In this document: positions 2,749 through 49,032 of the stretch, piece by piece
How positions within the stretch are numbered: position 1 is the stretch's first letter
How the letters are laid out: each line of letters opens with the position of its first letter
Assembly: GCA_965644295.1 (NCBI GenBank)
Contig: CBFFRP010000398.1
Span: 50,649 to 114,648 of the forward strand
Direction of reading: 5' to 3'
Length of the DNA: 64,000 bases
From: Paraphysomonas bandaiensis
Lineage: Eukaryota; Protista; Chrysophyceae
Notes under the pieces: model-generated
Told to the model about the DNA's origin: nothing
Database searches by the model: none
The model's input: only the letters and a program-made list of their open reading frames with translations
Translations under genes and position numbers: made by a program

Positions 2749-4351
2749 TTAGAGCTCATCCTCACTTTCACTAAGCTGGACCGGAATCAAAGTGCTATTT
2801 CCCTCTATTTTGTCGTCCGTCTCCCGCAGCTGCTGCTGCTTTTCAGCTACCTTCCTATCAGACTTTCCCCTGCTCTTCGCCTTCCGTGAAAACACCTCAG
2901 CATCGATGGGCTCTGTCTCTGTGCTGCTCCTGCCTCTTTCTCGCCTGGCTTGAGCTCTTCTATCCGGCATTCCCTTGTGATCGTAAAAAGACGCCTCGGC
3001 CACTGCTATCTTAGAATCTGCGGTCCCATAATAGAGCAGCCATTTGCCACGGAAGAACACTAGGCCTTCCAAAAAGCAAACATTTCCCACCTGCCCCGTT
3101 ATCTCAAAATCCTCAGAGGGCTTGAAAAAAGTTTCTTCCGACCTGCAGCAGCACCGACTCATCATCAGCGGCAAAAGTCGGAAGAATGGGTCACATTACC
3201 TCATCAACACCTTTGAAGGGTCATCCAAAGAAAACAGAACCTGTCCCGCCGAGTAGGTCCCCGGTGCCAAGTTTGGGTCTGCCTCGCCATTCACGCACCG
3301 ATAACCTGGCAGAGACTCACATGCAGTATTCTTAGAATTGTATATAAACAAAATGCCGTCTGGTCGCACGATTGCAGGCGGACCAGGCTCCACTAGATTC
3401 GAATCAAACTTTCCTCGCCTAGGGGAGAGGACAGATAGGGGTTTCTTGGCTGCGGTTGGAAGGTCCATATGGTCTGGTCGACCCCTATACACAGCGTCTG
3501 CATGTTCTGCCATAACAGGCGTCCAGTTGATGAGATCCTGGGATGTAGCGAGATGGAGATCATTTTCCCCCCAGTACATCCAAAAGCTTCCGTTCAGTTT
3601 GGCTGCCACAAGCCGTCCATCTGGCATGGGGTGCGAAACTATGGAACCCGATTTAGTCCAAGCATTCAAGTAAGAGCCCCCAAATGCTTTTCCAAATGCT
3701 GGCCCATGCTTTGTCCAGTGGAATAAATCACTACTGGTTGCAACACACAATCGGGCTGTACCATCATATGAGGTATACGTCATCACGTACCCTCCATCTG
3801 GAGATTCCACCACTCTCGGATCCTCACACCCACCATCCCATTCAAATTTGTCATTGCGATCCTTCGCGGGGTACAGTACAGGTGATGGGAGGCGATTATT
3901 GAAGCTGACTCCATCCTCGCTCCACGCTATACCGATACGTGAAGTACCAGCATAGCTACCAAGCTATCGGTTCGTAAGATACACTAATCACACACACATC
4001 TCATAACATCACCTTATCCTCTGCCCTATACAGCAAATAAACTTTGTTGTCCTTCACAACAGCCGCAGGATTAAAGACATCCTTCTCCTCCCATCTGACA
4101 TTTTTTCTTCTAACAGGACACTTAAAGACAGACGATGCATTCGGACCCAGCACAGGGTTCACTGCACCCATCTTTGAGAACTCCATCTGCCATGAGTGAT
4201 TTGGGGTCTCTGATTGTATCCTGTGAGTCATTTCAGGGGATAGTATGGTGTTACCTGTGCTAGATGCATACGTACACACGCATCCGTATATAAATAGAAG
4301 AGTAATGACATGAGAGGATTGGAGGGGGGTTGAGAGGACAGATAGGGCCAT
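2749..4351 (-). CDS. Glycoside hydrolase family 130, BT3780-like beta-1,2-mannosidase; probably secreted; 2 introns
   Basis: Motifs VFNPAA, LYRAED, TSRIG, GGCEDPR, WTKSGSIV, MYWGE, FDSNLVEPGPP, YSAGQ, FLEGLV and LYYGTADS are colinear with Bacteroides-type GH130 enzymes. Hydrophobic N-terminus. Introns at ~3965-4011 and ~3143-3198. Confidence 0.88.
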
Positions 4352-4972: not shown

Positions 4973-6526
4973 ATGAGTACTGAAGCAGCAGGCAGTACAG
5001 ATCAAGTGGATAAGTACTCCACACCTCCTCAGAAGACTCCTCTCGATATCTTCTTTACATACTTGAAGTACATCGTATCCTCTGGGCTCACTTTGACTTA
5101 TGTCGTCTACATCTTATGGGGCATATGGACCAATCAGGCGGTGTTGCCTGGCCCGCCTATCGCCCACTTCTTGATCTTTTTGTTCTGTATGACTCTTGTG
5201 GCGTATCTTGAGGGATTACAAGTGGCTATCTTAGCCGTTGAACACACTGATCCAGAGAAGTATCGGGAAACTCATCCACGTGCCTACGAGCTCATTACAT
5301 CAGTCAAGAGGGGTAATAATGTTGAAAAGTTTCTGGTTGGACGTCAGTTCTTCACAGTATTTGTTATGACTCTCATGGCACAAGTGACCAGTTTCCCTAA
5401 TATCTCTTCTCTTGGAATCCCACCAGTGATTTGGTTTATCTTCATTCAGACTGGTCTGCCTGGTGCAATGGTAGTTACCACTATTGGCTCACTTCAGCCC
5501 CAGCTGTTGGCTGCCAAGGACCCTTGGAAGTTTATGAATCTGTACGGGTCATGCGCGACTCTCTACCTTTGCTATGGTTTGGAGTTCACTGGTATCTGCA
5601 CACACTTCGCCTGGATGCTCATTACGATCCTACGCAACACCGTCTTCATCACGGATCAGAAACCCAAGAAGCACCAGAGGGAAGTCACTCTTCAAAGCCA
5701 ACTCATTGAGGCTGCTAAGTATGTGGTTTCCACATGCGTTATCCTAACTTACATGACCTACCTCATGTGGGGTATCTGGACTGGCCAGGCTGTGCTCCCT
5801 GTTCCTCACATTGCTGTCTTTATTGTCTTCTGCTGTTGTATTCTCTTTCTTGCTCACCTGGAGGGACTGCAGGTGGCGATATTGGTTGCAGAGGCAAAGG
5901 ACCCTGAGCCGTATGCTCAGAGTTATCCTCGCGCATACTCGCTCATGAAGAGAGCCACTTACGAAAAAAATGTCCGCCGATTCTTAATTGGAAGACAGTT
6001 TTTTGTCATCTTCGTAGTCTTTCTTATCAATCAGTGTACTATTTTCCCAGAAATTTCTAAATTGGGAATCAACAACGGTGTCTGGTTTGTGTTCGTCCAG
6101 CTGGGATTCCCAACCGCCCTCAACATCCTCTGTTTTGCTCAGCTTCCCGCTCAACTGCTCGGTAATCAGGATCCTTGGTTGTTTATGAACCGATATGGTC
6201 CCCGCTTCACTTTAGAGGTATGTCTTTTTACCGAGATGACTGGTTTGGCCCATTTCAGTTGGGTTGCTACATCTTTCTCCAAGGCTACTTGGTTCCCTAT
6301 TACTGTCAGCGCAATCTCTGAGATTGAGCAATACAAAGACCTAGAAAGCATTAAGACACCTAATGCAGCCACAGATGAGGTCACCTCAGCAGCTCCAACT
6401 TCAACTGTCCAGGATTACAACAGCGTTCCTGAGGCAGATCTTGCTACCGAGGAACTCGATATGGAAATGCATTCCAACCTTGGGCGATTTTTAAAGTCAT
6501 TTAGGCTTCCTACAGCCAGGAACTAA
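4973..6526 (+). CDS. SIT: Silicon (silicic acid) transporter, full-length two-repeat type, intronless
   Basis: 517-aa polytopic membrane ORF with two EGLQ and two GRQ motifs (the four GXQ motifs of SITs) in two homologous halves. Confidence 0.93.
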   Translation: MSTEAAGSTDQVDKYSTPPQKTPLDIFFTYLKYIVSSGLTLTYVVYILWGIWTNQAVLPGPPIAHFLIFLFCMTLVAYLEGLQVAILAVEHTDPEKYRETHPRAYELITSVKRGNNVEKFLVGRQFFTVFVMTLMAQVTSFPNISSLGIPPVIWFIFIQTGLPGAMVVTTIGSLQPQLLAAKDPWKFMNLYGSCATLYLCYGLEFTGICTHFAWMLITILRNTVFITDQKPKKHQREVTLQSQLIEAAKYVVSTCVILTYMTYLMWGIWTGQAVLPVPHIAVFIVFCCCILFLAHLEGLQVAILVAEAKDPEPYAQSYPRAYSLMKRATYEKNVRRFLIGRQFFVIFVVFLINQCTIFPEISKLGINNGVWFVFVQLGFPTALNILCFAQLPAQLLGNQDPWLFMNRYGPRFTLEVCLFTEMTGLAHFSWVATSFSKATWFPITVSAISEIEQYKDLESIKTPNAATDEVTSAAPTSTVQDYNSVPEADLATEELDMEMHSNLGRFLKSFRLPTARN

Positions 6527-7758: not shown

Positions 7759-10700
7759 TCAGTCTACTTGATTGAGTGATTGCTGCACACTAGTGTGTTT
7801 GCTCGGTGTGTTAGATTTGGCGTGAGCCATAACTTGCTGGAGCTCAACTGGTGTCAAGTGATCCAACTTGCCAGGTGCCCATCGGCTGACAAACCCTTGC
7901 GTATCTCCGACTAGGAGCTCATACATGTTCTCCCCTTCGTACACTCGTGGCAATAGAGGTTTAGACTTGTTAAATACAGCTGGAGATAGCTTCAAGGAGC
8001 ATATGTTGACACGGTGTATCTTTGTGAGAGCGTAGGACACAAGCTCTCGGACAACCCTTCTTTCACCATTCTCCCGTTCAACTGTGTTGACCTTTAGCTT
8101 CCAGAGGTACACATACCCGTTGTCATGCCCAGTGACAGCCACTACGCCATCTTGCCAGTCTCCAGACGGAGGACACAATACCACCCTCGCTCGGTGCTTC
8201 ACTGCTGACTCCTCAATCATGCTTGCAGACGATAAGAGCTCTCCGTTGAGGGAGTACAGCCGTAATTCCCCAGCAGTGAGTGTAACAATGTTTCCACTAA
8301 TGCTGTTCACACCAACAGATATGACAGGCCCAGAATGATGGCCAAGTACACGAAGCAACTTCGAGCCACGAAGGTCCCATACCATAGCAGTCCTATCTTC
8401 CGAACCAGAAACAACCACAGAGAAATTTACACATATTGTGACACATAAAATAGAGCCATCATGTCCACATAAGGTCATCTGTAATATGAACACAGACATA
8501 ATTACAAGAATATGTATGACATCGGAAGCACACACACCAGATGCTCTAATCTTCTATTTCCAGAAAGCTTTTGAAACTTCCACACCCTGATGGATCTATC
8601 TTCTCCTCCTACGAAATATTGCTGAGTGTGACCATCAATACATACTTGTGCCCTACCGGTTACAATGGTTTCTCCGTCAGCGCAAACGTCTACACACGAA
8701 ACAGGTCGGAAGTGAAGCTGCTCATGTGTGGATACTTCCCTGTCCACCTCCAGGTGCCTACGTTATCGCAATGTTATTCAGAAGTTGTTAAAATATTGAT
8801 AAACCTTGGTGAGCTCTGAGCAATATGAATCGACACTCCTCCCACAGTCTTTCCGAACCTAATAAATTTAACAAACTTTGGTGGAATCAGTGCACACCCC
8901 TCTGGAACTGCTATTAATCGGTCTCGTGATACAATACGCACGTCGCCAACAGGAAAACACTCCCCTGAGATGGAAGGGCTCAAAACCTGAGCGTAGGACA
9001 CCCTGTTCAGCCACACCATAGACGGGGCACCGACTACACATAGAGGGGGTGTCATTCTCTCGTGCCATTGTGAGCCGGCCGAGTCTACCACACATCCTGC
9101 GTCCGTTCGTTTCACCACATCGGGAACAGTTTTCTTGGGATGGGGTTTCATAAACAATCGGGCAGGAGTTTGCCCGAAGTTATTGATTTGAGCGAGTGTA
9201 GCTTCTCGCAACATGGGGTCTGTAATTGCATCGATATTCACTTCCCCCTCATATGTCAGAGGAATAAATACATTCATTGCATTCTCAGCGGCTTGTCCAC
9301 GCTGCTTGTACCCGAATATCAAATCTATCCAATTGTGAAGGTTCTCACTGACGTGTTTGCTCTCTAGCGCCTGTCGGTGGCGACGAATGAATTCAATTGC
9401 ATCACCCGCAGCCCAGGCAGGAAGCTGAACATCATCAACTTTCTCACCCTTCTGAGTTTCTCCGAATTCAAACCTGTTAGCATTTATCAGGAATTCCGGC
9501 AAGAAATAAAACTCAGGGATTAGTTCGCGCACATCTTGCAAATTATCCTGAGATGCACTCAACCAACTGTGCTCTAAAGCCTTAAAGAGTCTATCAGGCT
9601 TATCGAACTGACCACCTTGAAGAGAAATCGCCATTCGAGCGTATGGCTGGATTCGCATTAGATAGTAAAGCACATACCCCGCACATGAGTAGTGTGTGCC
9701 ATAAAAGAAGGGTGGCGTACATCCCTCTACTCCCTCCTTGTAGAAGTCGTCCATAGTTCGGAATCTCTCAGCGTACTGCTGGGCTCGTTTGTCTCCCAAG
9801 GCCCCCATAGGCCGAGATAAGTCTCTATACGAAGCAGGGTTGTTTAAATTTAGTGTTTGGCTCTCATAGTCAGCCAAAACCCAAGGGAAAACAGGGTACT
9901 GGGTAAGATCCTGGAAAGACCGACCAGCGGCGTAGTTCAGATGCATTAGATACTCCAGGTTACTGATACATCCTTTCTGCCAGAGCTTGGTCACATTCGA
10001 TAAAAAATAAGCCATCAGTCGTTTGTACATGAATAGCCCGCCTGCAATCTGTAAATTTTTCATTCCTACTTTGTAAAATATACTCTGCGGCATATTCATC
10101 TCCAGCAACCTTTTAAGAGTTGATTCACATTCCTAAATGACGTGTCATAAACGAAGTAGCGTAAACATAGACGTAGACATACCACTACACTATCGCAGGC
10201 AAATAGCAAGCTGCTGCCATAGATATCCGTCACCTCCATCGCGACATTCTGTAACTGATACCTCCTCTTAAAAATAGTGTACACCTATGTTATCACATTA
10301 TATATAACCACAGCATACAATGGGTTAAAACCTGATCCAAGGGCATCCTGTAATACCCATAGTCCACATGCAGCAGTTGATACCACACTTTAGTCAGCCA
10401 TTGGTTCTCCTTCTCCAAACTAGCGTCGCTATCACTGGGACACGCTTTATTTTTGCTTGCTCGGCTTTCAGTACTTTCTTTTACAGGCAAGTCGATGGTC
10501 CCTGACACACTGGCTACGACTTCTGCTGGGGAGAGGATCACCTTCTCCACAGCTTTATATTGACTGACTACCTCTGTCCATTCCAGTCTCCTGGATGAAC
10601 CCTCGCCATACACTTTAAATCCATCTAGGACATGTACATTTGATGGTGTAAGTACCAGCATGGCCCCTCGAGCTTCTAGTCCACACACCCTAAACAGAAT

Positions 10701-38178: not shown

Positions 38179-41100
38179 CTATTTATTTGTCGTTAGAGCT
38201 TGCCATGCTCGGCTCGCATTGGCATGAGCCGACAGCACAGAGGGGTTGGAGTCAATGGCAGCTGCTGCAAGAACGGCTGAGACTCGTACAGACACGGCCG
38301 CCTGCTTAAAGAATTCAACACGCCCATCTCCTGCTCCGGTGTTATCAAAAAGCCTACATAGGGCTGACAAAGCAGCTACTCTGATCTGATGATATCTTGA
38401 GTCATTAGTTGCGAATCCCACAATATCTAAGTAAGTTTGTAAATCATTGGAAAGGAGGGACCAAGAAGCAAGCGATTCCAGCAACACAATGGCAGCTCGG
38501 CGCACGCTCCAAATTTCATGGTGAATAACCCCACAAACCCATTTTACAAGTTTGGAAACTGTAGCAGCCAGTGTCTCACTGCTTCCGTCGCACTCCACAC
38601 AAAGAGATGGGCTGGAGGGCCATCCACGAGCAGAAGCTTCTAGAAACTTCACACGCACGGCGGCGTCTGCTTTACTAACAACAATTTCACTTGGTTGTTG
38701 GGACGATGAGGTCGTGTCACCATTTTCCTCTGCATTGGGTTCGCTTATATCCTCAACGGCAGATATAATTGTTTCCTCGGTTCTCGAAGTGCTGGTATCA
38801 TGTGAGGTAGCTACAGAAGCAATTGTTACCGTAGGTAAGGCGGGTGATGACAGTTTCGCCCGCTTGGATTTAGAATTCACAGAGAATTCATCCCCGTATC
38901 TTCCACCAAACATGTCCACTGCAGCCCGCACAGGAGCTGGTCTCGACTTCCCCTCATCATCCACTGCTTTAGAAATCGCAATTGGAGGTTCAGTCTCTAT
39001 CCCAGTAATAGATGAGGGTATGCCCGCTGCGTGCCAGATCCGCGGGAGGAGTGGTACCGTGGCCTTGACACCTGAAATAGTCTGTGCTATCTGCCATGGA
39101 AGGGTGCTCATTGCAGTAGCAGCGGCAAGGCGGTACTGCCTTTCGCCCCTTTCGCTCTCCTGAAGGAGGAGAGTGAGAACGCCTGACCAAGAAACACGCC
39201 AAGACTTGCAGGCGGGGAGAATAGATTTGCTATCTTCCTTCAAAGGTACACTGGCAGTTGTGCCCTCCCATTCCTGAACTCGTTGTGTGATGGTGTCATT
39301 TAATCTAACTCGAGATTCCATATCCCCCAGGTGGATCAATACAAACGAGGAGCTCCGTGACACTAAAGTGGCTGCAACCAAATCCGATACATTTGCACTC
39401 GTGTCTACACACTGCGGACAGTGCGAAAGCAGTGCAGAGAGTGTGCGCAGTACAGCCTCTTTGCCCCGCCACATCTGTCCGGGAAGAGTTTTAAGCATTC
39501 CAACGAGAATTCCAGTCATGTTGGGTGCTAGAAGGCCACTTGGGAAAATAGAGATGAGGTCTTTCGTAGCAGCTAAAGCTTGTGTGCGCTGAGTCCAAGA
39601 AAGGCTACCCAGGAGGCTCTCAATTCCTTTTAAAACATCAGTTAGAACGGCTCGTAGTGCGGCCTCCCTTGTGCCGTGCGTAGACTGGACGGTGGCGTCT
39701 GCAAACAGCTTCTCCCACGGGGCTCGGGTATCATCATCCTACAGGCATGGATTAATAGTGCAAAGACATAACACAGTTGAAAACACCCACACCTCGATGA
39801 AACTGCCGAGGTACGAACTGCAGAGTACCCATCGCCACATCTCTGATTCCTCCTGCAGGGCATCCCCTGCTTTTGCTATGATCTGATGAATGCACTCACC
39901 AACCACTGCCACCATGTGTGTATCTGCATTATCTGCTTTGTCGTACATGTCCACAAGTTTTCGAATGATTTCCACAAGAAACTCCGGGCTGGTGACCTTT
40001 GACAAAACGCCAACTGCAGACAGCATCTCTCTGGTGAGGCTTGACGAGGATGGCGGAGTCGGGAGCAGGGACGAGAGAATAATCCGAAAGCACTTCTCGG
40101 TGGTCACTCGCTTAAGAGATTCCGGATAGGAACTGACAATGTGTACCAATGAGCGAACCGCTGCCACTCGTGTGGCAAGCCCAACTCCTTGTTGGGTCTG
40201 CATAGAGAGATTCAAAGCAATTTCTGGTACAATACCGGTAGTAGTTGGAGCACGAAGAGATTCGAGACAAGCATCCAAGGCATCTTGCAGTGGTGATAGC
40301 TGCGAGAGACGTAAGCGAGTGGACTCAAGGTCTTCATTAGATATATTGAGTCTTTCTGTATGAAAGCTCATGTACTCCAGTGTGCGAGGTTCCATGGCTG
40401 ACATGCTCTCAACTAAAACAGATATGAGTCGTATAAGGTGGTCTTTAAGACTTGATTTCGTAACTTTCACAATGCGCAGCAGCAATCCCATAGAAAACCC
40501 TCGACCTTCAGGACTCGGAGCGAGGAGACCTTTGTCCAACAGGATAGGTATAATGAAGGCTGTTGCATCATCCAGAGTACTCTCTCGATTGGCGGGATTT
40601 ATGGACACTGAGTCCTCGTTAACTTCAGGATTACACGCAGTCACCACCTGAGGAGACGACAACAATGATATCAATCAAGTGTATTAATATCTGATCCATA
40701 AGGTACCTGGTTGGAGAGCACTTTCATAAACCCAAGTGCTGCGATTCTGGTTGTGTCCCGTACATCATCCAGAACCCTCATACCCAAGTCCCAGAGCTGT
40801 GCTATACAAGGTCTAATCTTTCTCCAGGGACGCTGAGGTATGTAAACCTCCAGTGCAAGACAAGCAGACTCCCTCTCCCGCCACTGCCGACTAGTCAAGT
40901 TTGACGCTAGATATTTGAGAATCTCCTCGCATTGGGAACTCAGCAGAGATGACTCTTGTTCTGTAGGAACCAGAGTAGACCACAAAGTCCGCATGAGATC
41001 TCGAATAGAAGGAGTTGGGTCAAACCGAGTCATATACAGCATCGGTAATAGACGGCGGATCCTCTCCCGATCGAGTTTAATCACTGGCGACTTGTATTTG

Positions 41101-44100
41101 TTAAAATATTTTTCAGTATCACTCCCATGGGATCCAAACGCAGGGTCTCGTCTCACAAGGGAAAGGACACCAAATACAACGGATGGGTCGCCAGCTTTCT
41201 TGGCTACCTTACATATTTTCGTGTAGACGCCGTATGAGTCCTCTCCTCTAGCGGAATTATTTCGTCTTTCGCCTAACTCTCCCCCCACGGATAGAGAACT
41301 AAATATATTCAGCTCAGCCGCAGCAGAGGCCGCAGCAGCAGCTAATAGGTCCTCCCCAGTTCCCCCTGCTGGAATAGGTACTGTCCCGCCCTCGAGAATT
41401 CGTTCCGCTTCCTCGGCCATGTCTCCAGCTGCACCTGACGAAGTGGACTCCCCAGCAACAGCAACACCTAAACATTTACGTCAAATACAAATTAAATATA
41501 AAACTCTATTACCTGCAATTGCAATCCCCTTTTTCTCTCTACAAAGGGTTGATATTACAAGGGAAGATATGCGCTCAGCTGCTTGTGCATACGATTTATC
41601 CGTCCCTTTATCATCCTTTTCCCCTTCCTTTTCCAAAGAAATACTGCTGGCAATGTCATAGAGTCTACAAAGGCCAGCACAGCATACATCCTGCGCAAAA
41701 GGCTCTTGAGTTGATGCTGGTGTATTCCCATCCAAGTGTTGTTGTGGACCTCTAATAACCAGGAGAAAAGCCACAGCCATTCGCTGGAGCAAATTTGGTC
41801 GGTGCAATTCTTTGCTTTGCTTTAAAGCGACCAAGAGTACCACAGCAGCGAAGCTGCGTTCCCTTTCCGTCCGCCCCACACTCAACACCACTACTTCCAT
41901 GCGTTCAAGAAGTTGAATCAACAAACTAGTGTCAAAAGAGTCCGCCATCGCCATGCGCACCACTGCTTCCGCCAGCTCGAACCGAAACATGACACTGTGT
42001 GTATCCTTCACAAGTTTCATATCAAGCAAAAAGTGCCACACATCAAAGAAGTCATCTGTTGTACAATTACAAGCACACTTGATATATATAGGTCAGTACC
42101 TCTATCCATGGCTCCAGCAGCACAAAGTTTGGAGAGTGATCTCACTGCTGAGGCAGCAACACTTACTTCCCCTTCAATACCTTCTCCTGTTAACGACGCA
42201 CAAGTGATTGTGGTCCGAAGACCCTCTAACAAGATAAGCTGCATTGGCGTCTTTTTATCAGACATAGTAAACTCTTGAGCAATCACCGGATCACAGTGAC
42301 CTTCCACCGCACAAGTAGGAATATTAGTCGAAAGAAGACCCCGACCAACAAGGTCACCTAGAGCGTCAAGGGCAACCTGCCGCAGCTTATGTGGCTGTGC
42401 AGATAACTCATCTCCGACAAGTGGAATAGCCATCGGTAAAAGCACATCAAAGAGCTCAGAACACATCTGTACAACTCTGAGCGATGACGACGAATTCGCA
42501 CCCTCTGATCTAGTCATGCTGTACTCGCAGACTAGCGTTTCAACCACCGCTGTTAGACACTTTATCGATGAACTAGTCACCTGATTAGTTGAAGAACCAC
42601 TTTGCACTTTCAATAGCAAGATCCTCCATACTTTAGCGACAAAATTCATATCATCCTGAGAAAAAAAGCCAGGTGTAGGACTCATACATAGAAGGCCTAT
42701 TGACTGTGCCAGATACTGCTGACTGGGTTCACTAACTACCTCCATCCACTGCAACAGAGAAGCTAACATGCTCCGCCCCTTAGCAGTACATTCACCCGCA
42801 CCAAGAAGCAAGGAATTCCGGGTCAATTTCACCATTCCCTCAACTAGTAACACTTGCTCAGGGTTTGCACATTGTCCAGACACCTCTCGCTCTGAAGAGA
42901 CTGTATCCAGTACTCGTACTACAAGGGAAGGGGGTATGACACAATCTTGAAACGTCTCAGAACGGCGGAAGCGCAGCGCTATCATAGGCCACTGAGCAGC
43001 CCCAATGAAAGGCGCACACCCAACATCCCCTTCAGGTAGTGCCTTCTCAAGTATATGAAATACAGTTAGAAATACCTCTCTCCGGGTGGCCAAATACCGC
43101 TTATCCTGACTATCAGCTGATGAATCCCGGACAGAGAGGAGAGAAGAAATCAGACTCTTTAGTTCCTCACTAGTGTCCTTATCACCAATGCTCTGCACGT
43201 GCGTTCTCAATTTGATAAATTCTGTTAACGCAGCGGCATGCACAATATCTGAGGGGTCACCTGTAATCAATACAATACTCAAATCTCCAAAACAATTAAG
43301 CATTATTCCTACCGGCAACAACGACCAATGCCTCAATGGCTCTTCTGGACCACCCGTACATGGCACGAGCCCATTGCAGACCCACTAATCTCTTCTTTGC
43401 AACAGATGAATTACGCGCTGAGAGTATAACTGCCTCAAGCTTATCAGCAGAATATGGTGTTACAATCCCTATATATAAATTGTAAATAAAGATGGAAGTA
43501 AAGTCATATACACGGTACCTTGAGGTCTATGTTCCTGATACGCTTGTCGTATGCCCCCAAGAGCGGATAAAAGCCTCGAAAGTCCACTCTCTGTCTCTTT
43601 TTCTATTAACTTAAATAGAGTAAGCACCGCATCCATCCCATACTCCTCACTAACAAGGGCTTTAGGGTACCGTCGAGAGAGAGAATCCATGATGGCGTAC
43701 GCTTTCTGCATATAACATAAACTGAGCACAACGTAACATTAGCACCTACATTTCGAACTGTGGTATCTACATCATCGACAGAAAACGCATTTTCACCACC
43801 TAAAAATCGCTGCAGAGCAGCAGTACAACCTTGCATTAATATATAGATGTCTCTCTCTTCCAGTATATGAGTTTCTCTTAACACTGCCTCTGTTAGTGTC
43901 AGCAGAGAGCCTTGGAGCCTTGCCCCGGCTTGTACTCCAGCTAAAGGACCAGGAAAATCACCTCTTTTCGAATATACTCGGTGCACTAGGTTGGTCACGT
44001 CGTGAAGAGTTGGCAAGGCCTCTCGAAGAGCCCACTGCAAGGCCTGTACCCTCACTTCCTCTTTAAGAGGAATTCTGTAAGCCAATCCCCGTTCACAGGT

Positions 44101-45008
44101 GTCTTCATACCCTAGGCCACAAATCTTCAATAGAAATCCCGATGCCTCCTGAATATTCCCTCCTGATCGTAATATGGCGGACCTTAAACCACTGAGTTTA
44201 AAGTTCGCCTCTTGTGCCACAACAGGGTCTGGATCACAGACGAGAACGCTACATATAGCTGCGGCGTACTTCCCTTGCAAGCCAGGCGCGAACACAGCAC
44301 TGAGCAAGCTCAGTTTTAATGGAGATATCTCAGGCAAAGGCCAGACCTCCCTCTTGGCAGTGAGACGACGTACTCTCTCCTGCGAAAGTCCAGGCTGGAT
44401 GGAGCCCACAGCATCACGTCTGAGGCCTGGCAGCACCAAAGAGACATCCAAAAGCCACCCAAGAACTGCATCCTTCACCCACTGTGACGACACTATGGAC
44501 GGGGAAGTCATTTGATTGATCACCTCCGGAAGCATGCGTAGTGTATAATTTAGTAGAGCAGCAGCTTGATTCGAGTACTCTCCACCGTTGTCCACAACAA
44601 AGCTATCAAGTGCACGGAGGATCGCACATGCACAGTCTTCTCTACCACTAATGGGAACTTTGTCGATAGAGAGATCAATTAGACTTATTGCTATATTGCA
44701 GGCATATGGAAGCATATCTCTACGGACGATTCTATCTATCAACACAGCACAAGGCAGTGAGATACCCAGAGATTTAACACGCCGCGATATATTCGTCACT
44801 ATTGTCAACACTTGCGGTCTTAAATCATCTTTATTACAAAGGGGTAATAGCCCTGGTAGTAGTTTATCAAGCACTCTGGGGAGCTGTAAGGGGGGTTAGG
44901 AATAGAGTGATACATCACATGAACACATCCATTTACCTCATCGTTTGATGTTGCAGTAACTCGATCATGAACTCGTTGTAATGCCGCAACATCAGCAGAA
45001 GATGTCAT
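38179..45008 (-). CDS. ECM29: Proteasome adaptor/scaffold ECM29 (HEAT repeats), multi-exon
   Basis: N-terminal LDKLLPGLL. Conserved blocks LYMTRFDPTPSIR..MRTLW, QWRERESACLAL, RVLDDVRDTTR, SAMEP..LEY, GVGLATRVAA and W.GKE. Confidence 0.85.
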
Positions 45009-46614: not shown

Positions 46615-49032
46615 TGTGATACCAGCGTCTCTGACCCTGGCTCAACTAAACCAATAACGAGTTCAATATCTCTGACGCGCTGCTCATCAGCACTCGATAT
46701 TGACTGTTGTTCTTCAATAATCATTGCTCTGATCCTTCTCAGAGCTAAATGAAACAGACTAGAGTCATGAACCTCCATTTTAGGTTCTCTCTCCATGGTA
46801 CTAATAGATAACTAACAATGAATATGACTGCAACTACAATACTATCTACAAGCAACTTCCAGAGTACAGAAATTGCATCTTATTATCAACAATCAATATA
46901 TACATATGATTCCCAGGCCAGAGGAAGGCCTCCAGGAATGACCTTCATCCATATACATCACTAATAACTCAGCCTGATCACAACTGATTCATCATCAATG
47001 CATAAGGGAAGATACATTCAGTATTCTCATTGTAGTTGAAGCCTTGTATACGTACTTCCAAGTACAGTTCAATAAACAATAAGTACCTAATGAAATACAT
47101 AAGTACAACTGTATTACTGGATAATCTGGCAATACACGTCTATCAGCATGGATATCAAACCCGGAATTCTCCAGTAAACTTCTCCAGCCTTAAGCATTAA
47201 TATATATATATAATAAGAACATATACATATAAATCATCAATCATAATATCTTCATCATTGAACTTCATTATTGGTAATCCTGTCTTTCTTTGTCTTTTGA
47301 ATAGATATATAAGTATCAATGATAAGCATAAATTGTCATATTCATAATATATCATATAGCTTAATGTGAGATATGGTAATAATAATAATATTCAATCTAT
47401 GTTTGCACAGATAGTATGTACAAAGTTAAGCATATACAATAGAGAGCTCATGTAGCATAAAATAACCAGATATGGCTGGTTATTACACTACCCCCTCCAG
47501 CAGTCGCATACGCCAGTATGCGGAACGAAGTTCACTGCGAACCTCTAGTATGTAGTTTCCTACTGATTGGATAAATCCGGACTTCGTACTCGTCAAATTT
47601 AGCATCATAAAGCACATTACATTGCAGCTGTACACCTTCATATGGACCTTCAAATTTCGCCTGTAGAATGGCCTTAAATTTGGTATGGTTCTTCATTGTG
47701 TAGGGTACATCATAATCACTAATGTGAACGCGTGCAGCTGGTCTTCTATGTTTCCTGGTTGGTATTGTCTATCGGTGTTGTAGACATCCTATCTTCCTGA
47801 AGTGGAATGTGTATGTGCCACATTCCCTGCATGAGGTGAGGGTATATATGACGACACTCCTTCATTCAGCATTCTTGTTACTATGTTCTCTGGCTTGCAA
47901 GGGGTCCATATGTACTGGACTATCACCTGTCGCATCTCCATCAATTGAACATAAATCCTCCTGGGCCCTCAATGGTTGGATTACATTCTAACCGATTACG
48001 AGAGGCTTGGGCTAACAAAAACCTCCACCGGGCTACTCGAATGTTCCACCAGTTCTGGAACAGTTGTGACTAAACTGTCGATATCCTGTTGAATTGCTCG
48101 CTCATCGAGATCGTTACCTCGGTCCACACGAGAATCAATTTCTGTAAAAAATGTGATACCAGCGTCTCTGACCCTGGCTCAACTAAACCAATAACGAGTT
48201 CAATATCTCTGACGCGCTGCTCATCAGCACTCGATATTGACTGTTGTTCTTCAATAATCATTGCTCTGATCCTTCTCAGAGCTAAATGAAACAGACTAGA
48301 GTCATGAACCTCCATTTTAGGTTCTCTCTCCATGGTACTAATAGATAACTAACAATGAATATGACTACAACTACAATACTATCTACAAGCAACTTCCAGA
48401 GTACAGAAATTGCATCTTATTATCAACAATCAATATATACATATGATTCCCAGGCCAGAGGAAGGCCTCCAGGAATGACCTTCATCCATATACATCACTA
48501 ATAGCTCAGCCTGATCACAACTGATTCATCATCAATGCATAAGGGAAGATACATTCAGTATTCTCATTGTAGTTGAAGCCTTGTATACGTGCTTCCAAGT
48601 ACAGTTCAATAAACAATAAGTACCTAATGAAATACATACTGTAAGTACAACTGTATTACTGGATAATCTGGCAATACACGTCTATCAGCATGGATATCAA
48701 ACCCGGAATTCTCCAGTAAACTTCTCCAGCCTTAAGCATTAATATATATATATAATAAGAACATATATATATAAATCATCAATCATAATATCTTCATCAT
48801 TGAACTTCATTATTGGTAATCCTGTCTTTCTTTGTCTTTTGAATGATTATGTAAATATCAATGATAAGCATGAATTGTCATATAGTCATAATATATCATA
48901 TATATCCTACTGTGAAATATGGCAATAATAATAATAATCAACCTATGTTACACATATAGTATGTACAAAGTTAAGCATATACAATAGAGAGCTCATGTAG
49001 CATAAAATAACCAGATATGGCTGGTTATTACA
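46615..49032 (-). mobile_element. Non-autonomous LTR retroelement (Ty3/gypsy-derived, TRIM-like)
   Basis: Direct repeats 46615-47487 and 48152-49032 with TG...CA ends. 4-bp TSD ACTG at 46611-46614 and 49033-49036. Polypurine tract GGAGGGGGTAG (minus, 47488-47498). 664-bp interior with a KFEGPYE (GPY/F) relic. Confidence 0.93.

Follow-up and report, generated by a model that had tools for sequence, protein, structure and literature searches.

The window, the whole 64,000-nucleotide stretch of DNA that was analysed, carries a short LTR retroelement. This element is a deletion derivative of an active Ty3/gypsy element of ~10.3 kb, in a family that most likely primes minus-strand DNA with its own RNA, as Tf1 does. 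A stretch of the LTR pairs with a site lying immediately past the 5′ LTR, at the position of a primer-binding site (PBS). This pairing is kept by compensatory change in eight lineages that have no tRNA-type site, and the sister clade carries a tRNA-type site.

The window element is complete, 2.4 kb long and non-autonomous, and is read on the minus strand from position 49032 to 46615. Its parts are the following.

48152-49032, minus strand: 5′ LTR, 881 bp, TG..CA, holding the promoter, the self-primer and the ORF1 start; the target duplication CAGT precedes it at 49036-49033
48432-48439, minus strand: TATA-like box TATATATT, 27 nt ahead of the primer
48402-48412, minus strand: CAATTTCTGTA, the proposed self-primer, where the transcript is predicted to begin
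48070-48333, minus strand: truncated ORF1 of 87 codons, which begins within the LTR, crosses the LTR end, the T-run and the PBS, and shows homology to the N-terminus of ORF1 in the autonomous element
48147-48151, minus strand: T-run spacer of five T between the terminal CA of the LTR and the PBS, read as Phe/Leu codons and kept across the clade
48136-48146, minus strand: primer-binding site TACAGAAATTG, exact complement of 48412-48402, without TGG
47488-48151, minus strand: internal region, 664 bp, without pol
47488-47498, minus strand: polypurine tract (PPT) GGAGGGGGTAG, abutting the 3′ LTR
46615-47487, minus strand: 3′ LTR, 873 bp, TG..CA, in which the 11-mer recurs at 46875-46865 and after which the target duplication CAGT lies at 46614-46611

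Several of these features had been proposed in the first-pass annotation, and those were all recovered. The orientation is as claimed, with the PPT beside the 46615-47487 LTR and all coordinates correct. In place of a TGG-type tRNA PBS, five T and then TACAGAAATTG follow the 5′ LTR. The complement said to be perfect over 11 nt is so, since CAATTTCTGTA pairs exactly with TACAGAAATTG from both of its LTR positions, and the 11-mer does lie 27 nt past the TATA box, found as TATATATT at 48439-48432. The window contains 3 exact copies of the 11-mer, where 0.08 would be expected. When the 25 nt following the LTR were compared with shuffled LTRs, an equally long complement was obtained in 6 of 2000 shuffles. 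The two LTRs of the window element are 96.7% identical to each other.

More than 40 sequences in the 62.5-Mb assembly match the window LTR. Among these, LTR pairs spaced 9.4 kb apart define an autonomous Ty3/gypsy element of 10,277 bp (L031/L032), which has two ORFs, ORF1 then Pol:

L031:501-1376: LTR of the autonomous element, target duplication AGTC
L031:5281-9843: Pol of the autonomous element, contig C123

The Pol domains are RT, RNase H, SET and integrase (H2C2 and core), with a weak match to a Tf2-type SH3. RNase H and integrase are separated by the SET domain (lysine-methyltransferase-like); a chromodomain is absent. ORF1 (1356 aa) gave no significant Pfam match; it starts in the LTR and continues past the LTR end into the T-run, which encodes Phe-Phe or Phe-Leu, and through the PBS. 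The marks of Ty3/gypsy elements are present: the RT-RNase H-integrase order, TG..CA LTRs, 4-bp duplications (CAGT, AGTC) and a PPT. The RT is 99-100% identical at at least nine loci and the LTRs of the C123 copy are identical to each other, which indicates that the family moved recently.

The window element, LTRs included, aligns to positions 1-1281 and 9212-10059 of this autonomous element. With pol absent, it is thus an internally deleted, non-autonomous derivative, and the first-pass view of a non-autonomous member of a gypsy lineage now has its full-length partner in the same genome. By eye, the two elements also agree over the ~55 nt that lead up to the 3′ LTR, PPT included.

Other copies of the family were seen in the assembly. 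A third LTR subfamily with a different U5 end (...GGAGGGTGTTACA) is found at L010-L014, L016, L018-L020 and L024-L027 of the host genome. The copies seen are solo or 3′ LTRs with no PBS after them; one such 5′ LTR (L015) has the PBS of the window element. The L045 copy, with the variant 11-mer CAATTTCTTCA, looks like a solo LTR with no T-run or PBS after it and was uninformative. Non-autonomous tandems of the form LTR-internal-LTR-internal-LTR occur at C108:245144-249090, where LTR starts recur every 1537 bp, and at C210:126330-130940; both presumably arose by unequal or inter-element recombination.

Compensatory changes between the LTR 11-mer and the PBS had been proposed as a check, and they are found both within the genome and across seven other lineages. 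In the autonomous element L031, the primer CAATTTCCTTA and the PBS TAAGGAAATT form 10 bp, compared with 11 bp for CAATTTCTGTA and TACAGAAATTG in the window element. Two adjacent base pairs differ on both sides, from TG:CA to CT:AG, and the duplex is kept. All PBS-bearing non-autonomous copies, including the subfamily with a different U5 end, show the perfect 11-bp match; these copies are close kin and therefore carry little independent weight. A palindromic reading of the PBS does not apply to the window element family; the PBS pairs with a distant LTR site.

To extend the comparison beyond the host, contigs of eleven metagenomic relatives were fetched. Two elements possess both LTRs and target duplications: L049 (LTR 3414-4277, primer TCATTGTTA, PBS TAACAATGA) and L054 (LTR end 6426, primer AAGTTTTA, PBS TAAAACTT). 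In L047 (primer GAATTTCA, PBS TGAAATTC) and L048 (primer TAAATCTAAA, PBS TTTAGATTTA), as also in L057 and L058, the LTR end was placed by homology and not from a second LTR and its flank. The LTR end could not be identified in L055 (P0043), for which the priming type was not called, nor set in L052; no LTR pair was found in L053, and self-comparison of L051 gave no repeat.

A single rule was then applied to six elements. PBS8 was defined as the final T of the post-LTR T-run and the following 7 nt. In all six cases, and with six different sequences, the LTR of the same element held the complement of PBS8 at a distance of 25-87 nt upstream of the ORF1 ATG, the chance rate per element being 6-38 in 5000 shuffles. 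Cross-pairings between elements gave a match anywhere in the LTR in only 2 of 30 combinations. All six lineages have a TATA-like box whose start lies 20-29 nt ahead of the primer. A second, annotation-free test considered each T-run of at least 4 within the first 600 nt of ORF1. It recovered all five of the earlier elements that were retested, gave no match with two tRNA-type elements, and added two new lineages, L058 with an 8-mer match (61/3000) and L057 with a 7-mer match (90/3000).

Altogether, eight lineages (the window element, L031 and six metagenomic lineages) carry eight different self-complementary pairs in one layout: primer, ORF1 ATG inside the LTR, LTR end CA, T-run, PBS. None of the eight self-type PBSs begins with TGG, nor can any of them base-pair with a ...CCA 3′ end. 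In three lineages (L049, L047 and L054) the exact duplex is no longer than 7-8 bp, and these are not individually significant in a liberal test of the longest complement with any k-mer.

Between the terminal CA and the PBS lie 5-7 T in the window element (48151-48147), L031, L047, L048, L049, L054 and L057. This run may be a cleavage or initiation spacer, or may reflect a coding constraint alone. The PBS of L058 lies 12 nt past the nearest CA. A spacer of 5-7 nt (12 nt in L058) would leave bases past CA for integrase to trim, which counts against the proposed priming.

The sister clade has a tRNA-type PBS at the homologous place. This clade A comprises the host elements C661/C476 and the metagenomic L050 and L056, with TGGTGGACAA... 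as PBS. In the second host family (C661, C476), whose RT is 45% identical, the LTR is followed after 2 nt by TGGTGGACAACGTGGG, and a search for self-complements of at least 8 nt gave none. In L050 and L056, TGGTGGACAA... is at the same place, inside ORF1. A Cauli_VI domain (PF01693) was also observed in ORF1 of these two elements (L050:232-3645, L056:5072-8311). The complement of the sister-clade PBS, taken as positive control for the tRNA search, has 47 exact matches in the genome. Two of them, C111:77980-77992 and C263:497388-497400, lie ~170 nt downstream of scored tRNAs in the same orientation and may be the primer tRNA genes of this clade.

The relationship was examined with a quick IQ-TREE of RT-RNase H (67 rows, without a Tf1/sushi reference). 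The tRNA-type elements form a clade of 5 rows (SH-aLRT 100), sister to a clade of 38 rows with a support of 84-86, and every self-type element examined falls in the latter. The branch that carries the group with a SET domain is long and has full support, and the rows bearing a chromodomain lie elsewhere. Neither the focal Pol nor its clade has the chromodomain PF00385, which was seen in P0114, P0117 and P0119, placed far off in the tree. An RT-RNase H search retrieved a large unnamed RT-RNase H-SET-integrase clade from aquatic metagenomes (48-59% identity), and the top named matches of Pol were plant and invertebrate elements (35-38% identity). In a large metagenomic subclade (L051, L052, L054 and L057; P0007-P0059), an AP-endonuclease-like Exo_endo_phos domain (PF03372) was seen upstream of RT with the integrase kept, an unusual pairing for an LTR element. 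Covariation, unrelated pairs in one layout and the tRNA-type PBS of the sister clade together make self-priming well supported. The gypsy lineage with self-priming suggested by the first-pass annotation is supported by the covariation, the PBS position, the missing tRNA-type site and the tRNA-type sister clade.

In the mechanism that we propose, transcription would begin ~25-30 nt after the TATA box of the LTR; for the window element a start at ~48412 is predicted solely by this spacing. The first 8-11 nt of the transcript would fold back over ~260 nt onto their complement just past U5, behind the short U-run. The RNase H of the element would cut at the end of the duplex, and the freed 3′-OH would then be extended through U5 and R in a Tf1-like manner. 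With priming by its own RNA, a derivative could carry a primer/PBS pair unlike that of the parent lending the enzymes.

Minimum free energy folds of the leader, starting at the primer, were computed for six lineages. The full primer:PBS duplex is in the fold of four of them, with pair probabilities of 0.98 (window element), 0.92 (autonomous element), 0.90 (L049) and 0.94 (L048); it is not in that of L047 (0.49) or L054 (~0). The duplex encloses the ORF1 start codon and the first 55-103 codons. A local hairpin beginning with the primer (CAATTTC, a 9-nt loop, GAAATTG) was also observed at window 48412-48390, with one G.U in this copy, and at L031:1105-1127. Because the sequence of its 3′ arm recurs in the 3′ half of the PBS, the leader could switch between closing its 5′ end and forming the priming duplex. 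With the primer predicted in the cap-proximal 5′ UTR and the PBS ~55-100 codons into ORF1, the duplex would close the start codon, so that an RNA would be either translated or reverse-transcribed. A tentative extension, which we consider rather doubtful as a whole, is that self-priming arose independently in this SET Gypsy clade with a tRNA-primed sister, and that closing of the start codon by the duplex acts as a translate-or-reverse-transcribe switch, perhaps set by the hairpin. If true, a primer switch would have been caught between close relatives.

The pairing might serve another purpose, such as 5′ leader closure for ORF1 translation, packaging or dimerisation, with another primer starting the minus strand. 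Covariation indeed shows pairing and not priming; the enclosed start codon and codons would suit such a role, and the hairpin beside the primer could be a switch. We nevertheless hold this unlikely, as the 3′ partner is at the canonical PBS position, occupied by a tRNA PBS in the sister clade, no other candidate primer site was recognised in these elements, and the duplex always ends on the T-run side, where the 3′ end of a primer must sit. It is less probable still that the same LTR-derived primer acts in trans, supplied by the other genomic RNA in a packaged dimer or by a short LTR transcript made separately. Cis and trans pairing are not separated by the data presented here, but the PBS is non-palindromic in most lineages, the duplex already forms in single-molecule folds, and priming in Tf1 is intramolecular.

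A host tRNA fragment or other small RNA could also be the primer, the LTR match being secondary. Some copia lineages are primed by tRNA halves (PMC6317226). The exact 11-mer has 111 matches in the genome compared with 25 for a control pattern, and none of the 100 matches listed (of 111 in total) lies inside the 63 scored host tRNA genes. Priming by tRNA halves is excluded mainly by the covariation argument, and not fully, because this screen was by coordinate only. Such a primer is nonetheless very improbable: TGG is missing, the PBS differs by lineage yet always fits its own LTR, and parent and derivative in one genome differ by compensatory changes. Finally, the complementarity could be due to chance in AT-rich LTRs, and 7-9-mers taken alone reach only p ~0.03-0.2 in liberal tests. 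However, the match recurs at an equivalent position in eight lineages, the six PBS8 zone probabilities multiply to ~1e-14 and the cross-pair controls are at chance level. Chance is refuted by the PBS8 rule and the annotation-free test, and we give it practically no weight against self-priming.

To our knowledge, self-primed reverse transcription has been demonstrated only for Tf1, and elsewhere consists of complementarity within single sequences. The Tf1 RNA pairs with its PBS through its first 11 nt, and is cut by RNase H between nt 11 and 12 (PMC7175516). Self-priming has been proposed for Tj1 of S. japonicus (PMC4600332), and its use has been predicted in the Tcn1 clade of fungi, mosses and club mosses and in the copia TAR lineage (Houba, Osr-1), with 12% of surveyed plant elements concerned (PMC6317226). 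The mechanism, placed mainly in the Tf1/sushi group by the earlier statement, is no longer confined there in view of the predictions for the plant Tcn1 clade and copia TAR. Our literature search did not find self-priming described for chromist algae, nor joined with diatoms, oomycetes, haptophytes or dinoflagellates.

The mechanism is thus already known and the present lineage is a variant of it, with a SET domain, a PBS in a gag-like ORF, a U-run spacer, a duplex of 7-11 bp and a tRNA-primed sister. As in Tf1/Tf2 of Schizosaccharomyces pombe (Tf1/sushi), there is no tRNA PBS and ~11 nt at the transcript start, a predicted start in the present lineage, are complementary to the site after the 5′ LTR. 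In contrast to Tf1/sushi, the present Pol has SET between RNase H and integrase and no chromodomain, and the element has two ORFs. ORF1 starts in the LTR, which places the PBS inside coding sequence, another difference. Further differences are the conserved T-run of 5-7 nt between U5 and PBS, the duplex length of 7-11 bp and the tRNA-primed sister clade; the present lineage is known from sequence alone. Ty1 of Saccharomyces cerevisiae resembles the present element in that gag starts within the 5′ LTR and the PBS is inside the gag frame, but it is copia-type and primed by initiator tRNA-Met.

For Tcn1 and TAR, as here, self-priming was inferred from sequence alone, from a part of the LTR that can pair with the site following it (PMC6317226). 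The present clade belongs to neither group, Tcn1 elements being chromoviruses with kinship to Tf1/sushi and TAR elements copia; the argument made here draws on eight lineages with compensatory change and on a sister clade primed by tRNA. In SM-Tcn1 the 5′ LTR is followed by a conserved thymine-rich stretch (PMC2864245), without a recognised complement. Skipper of Dictyostelium likewise lacks TGG, and its 5′ LTR is followed at once by a polypyrimidine stretch (PMC5006619); it has no complementary LTR region, unlike the present elements, which always have one beside the T-run.

Self-priming in this clade probably had an origin separate from that in Tf1/sushi. The SET domain and the missing chromodomain of Pol argue for this, and the tRNA-primed sister clade suggests it as well; as the tree holds no Tf1/sushi reference, we infer a separate origin rather than read it as a result. 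More than one evolutionary origin of self-priming is thereby suggested. The family described here is young and multi-copy and provides a natural compensatory double mutant in the form of a parent and its non-autonomous derivative. Together with a wide clade of relatives with differing primer/PBS pairs and a tRNA-primed sister clade, it gives strong comparative support for self-priming outside fungi, vertebrates and plants. Annotation pipelines seek tRNA PBSs; there is now a concrete rule for self-primed elements in algal and metagenomic assemblies.

The surroundings of the element were also inspected. ARAGORN, run on the window and 41 of the fetched loci, reported one tRNA-Thr. This tRNA-Thr(TGT) gene (L016:803-874) is ~630 bp from a family LTR, a single case from which no targeting is claimed. 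The window contains an intact ORF of 517 aa for a silicon transporter (4973-6526), whose best named relative is from Ochromonas triangulata (67% identity). The chrysophyte-like host put forward earlier is plausible on this ground, and loosely placed. On the minus strand, the window also carries ECM29 N-terminal and ECM29 HEAT-repeat ORFs (proteasome adaptor) at 39739-44874; the LTR element is in intergenic DNA, ~1.7 kb upstream of the ECM29 gene.
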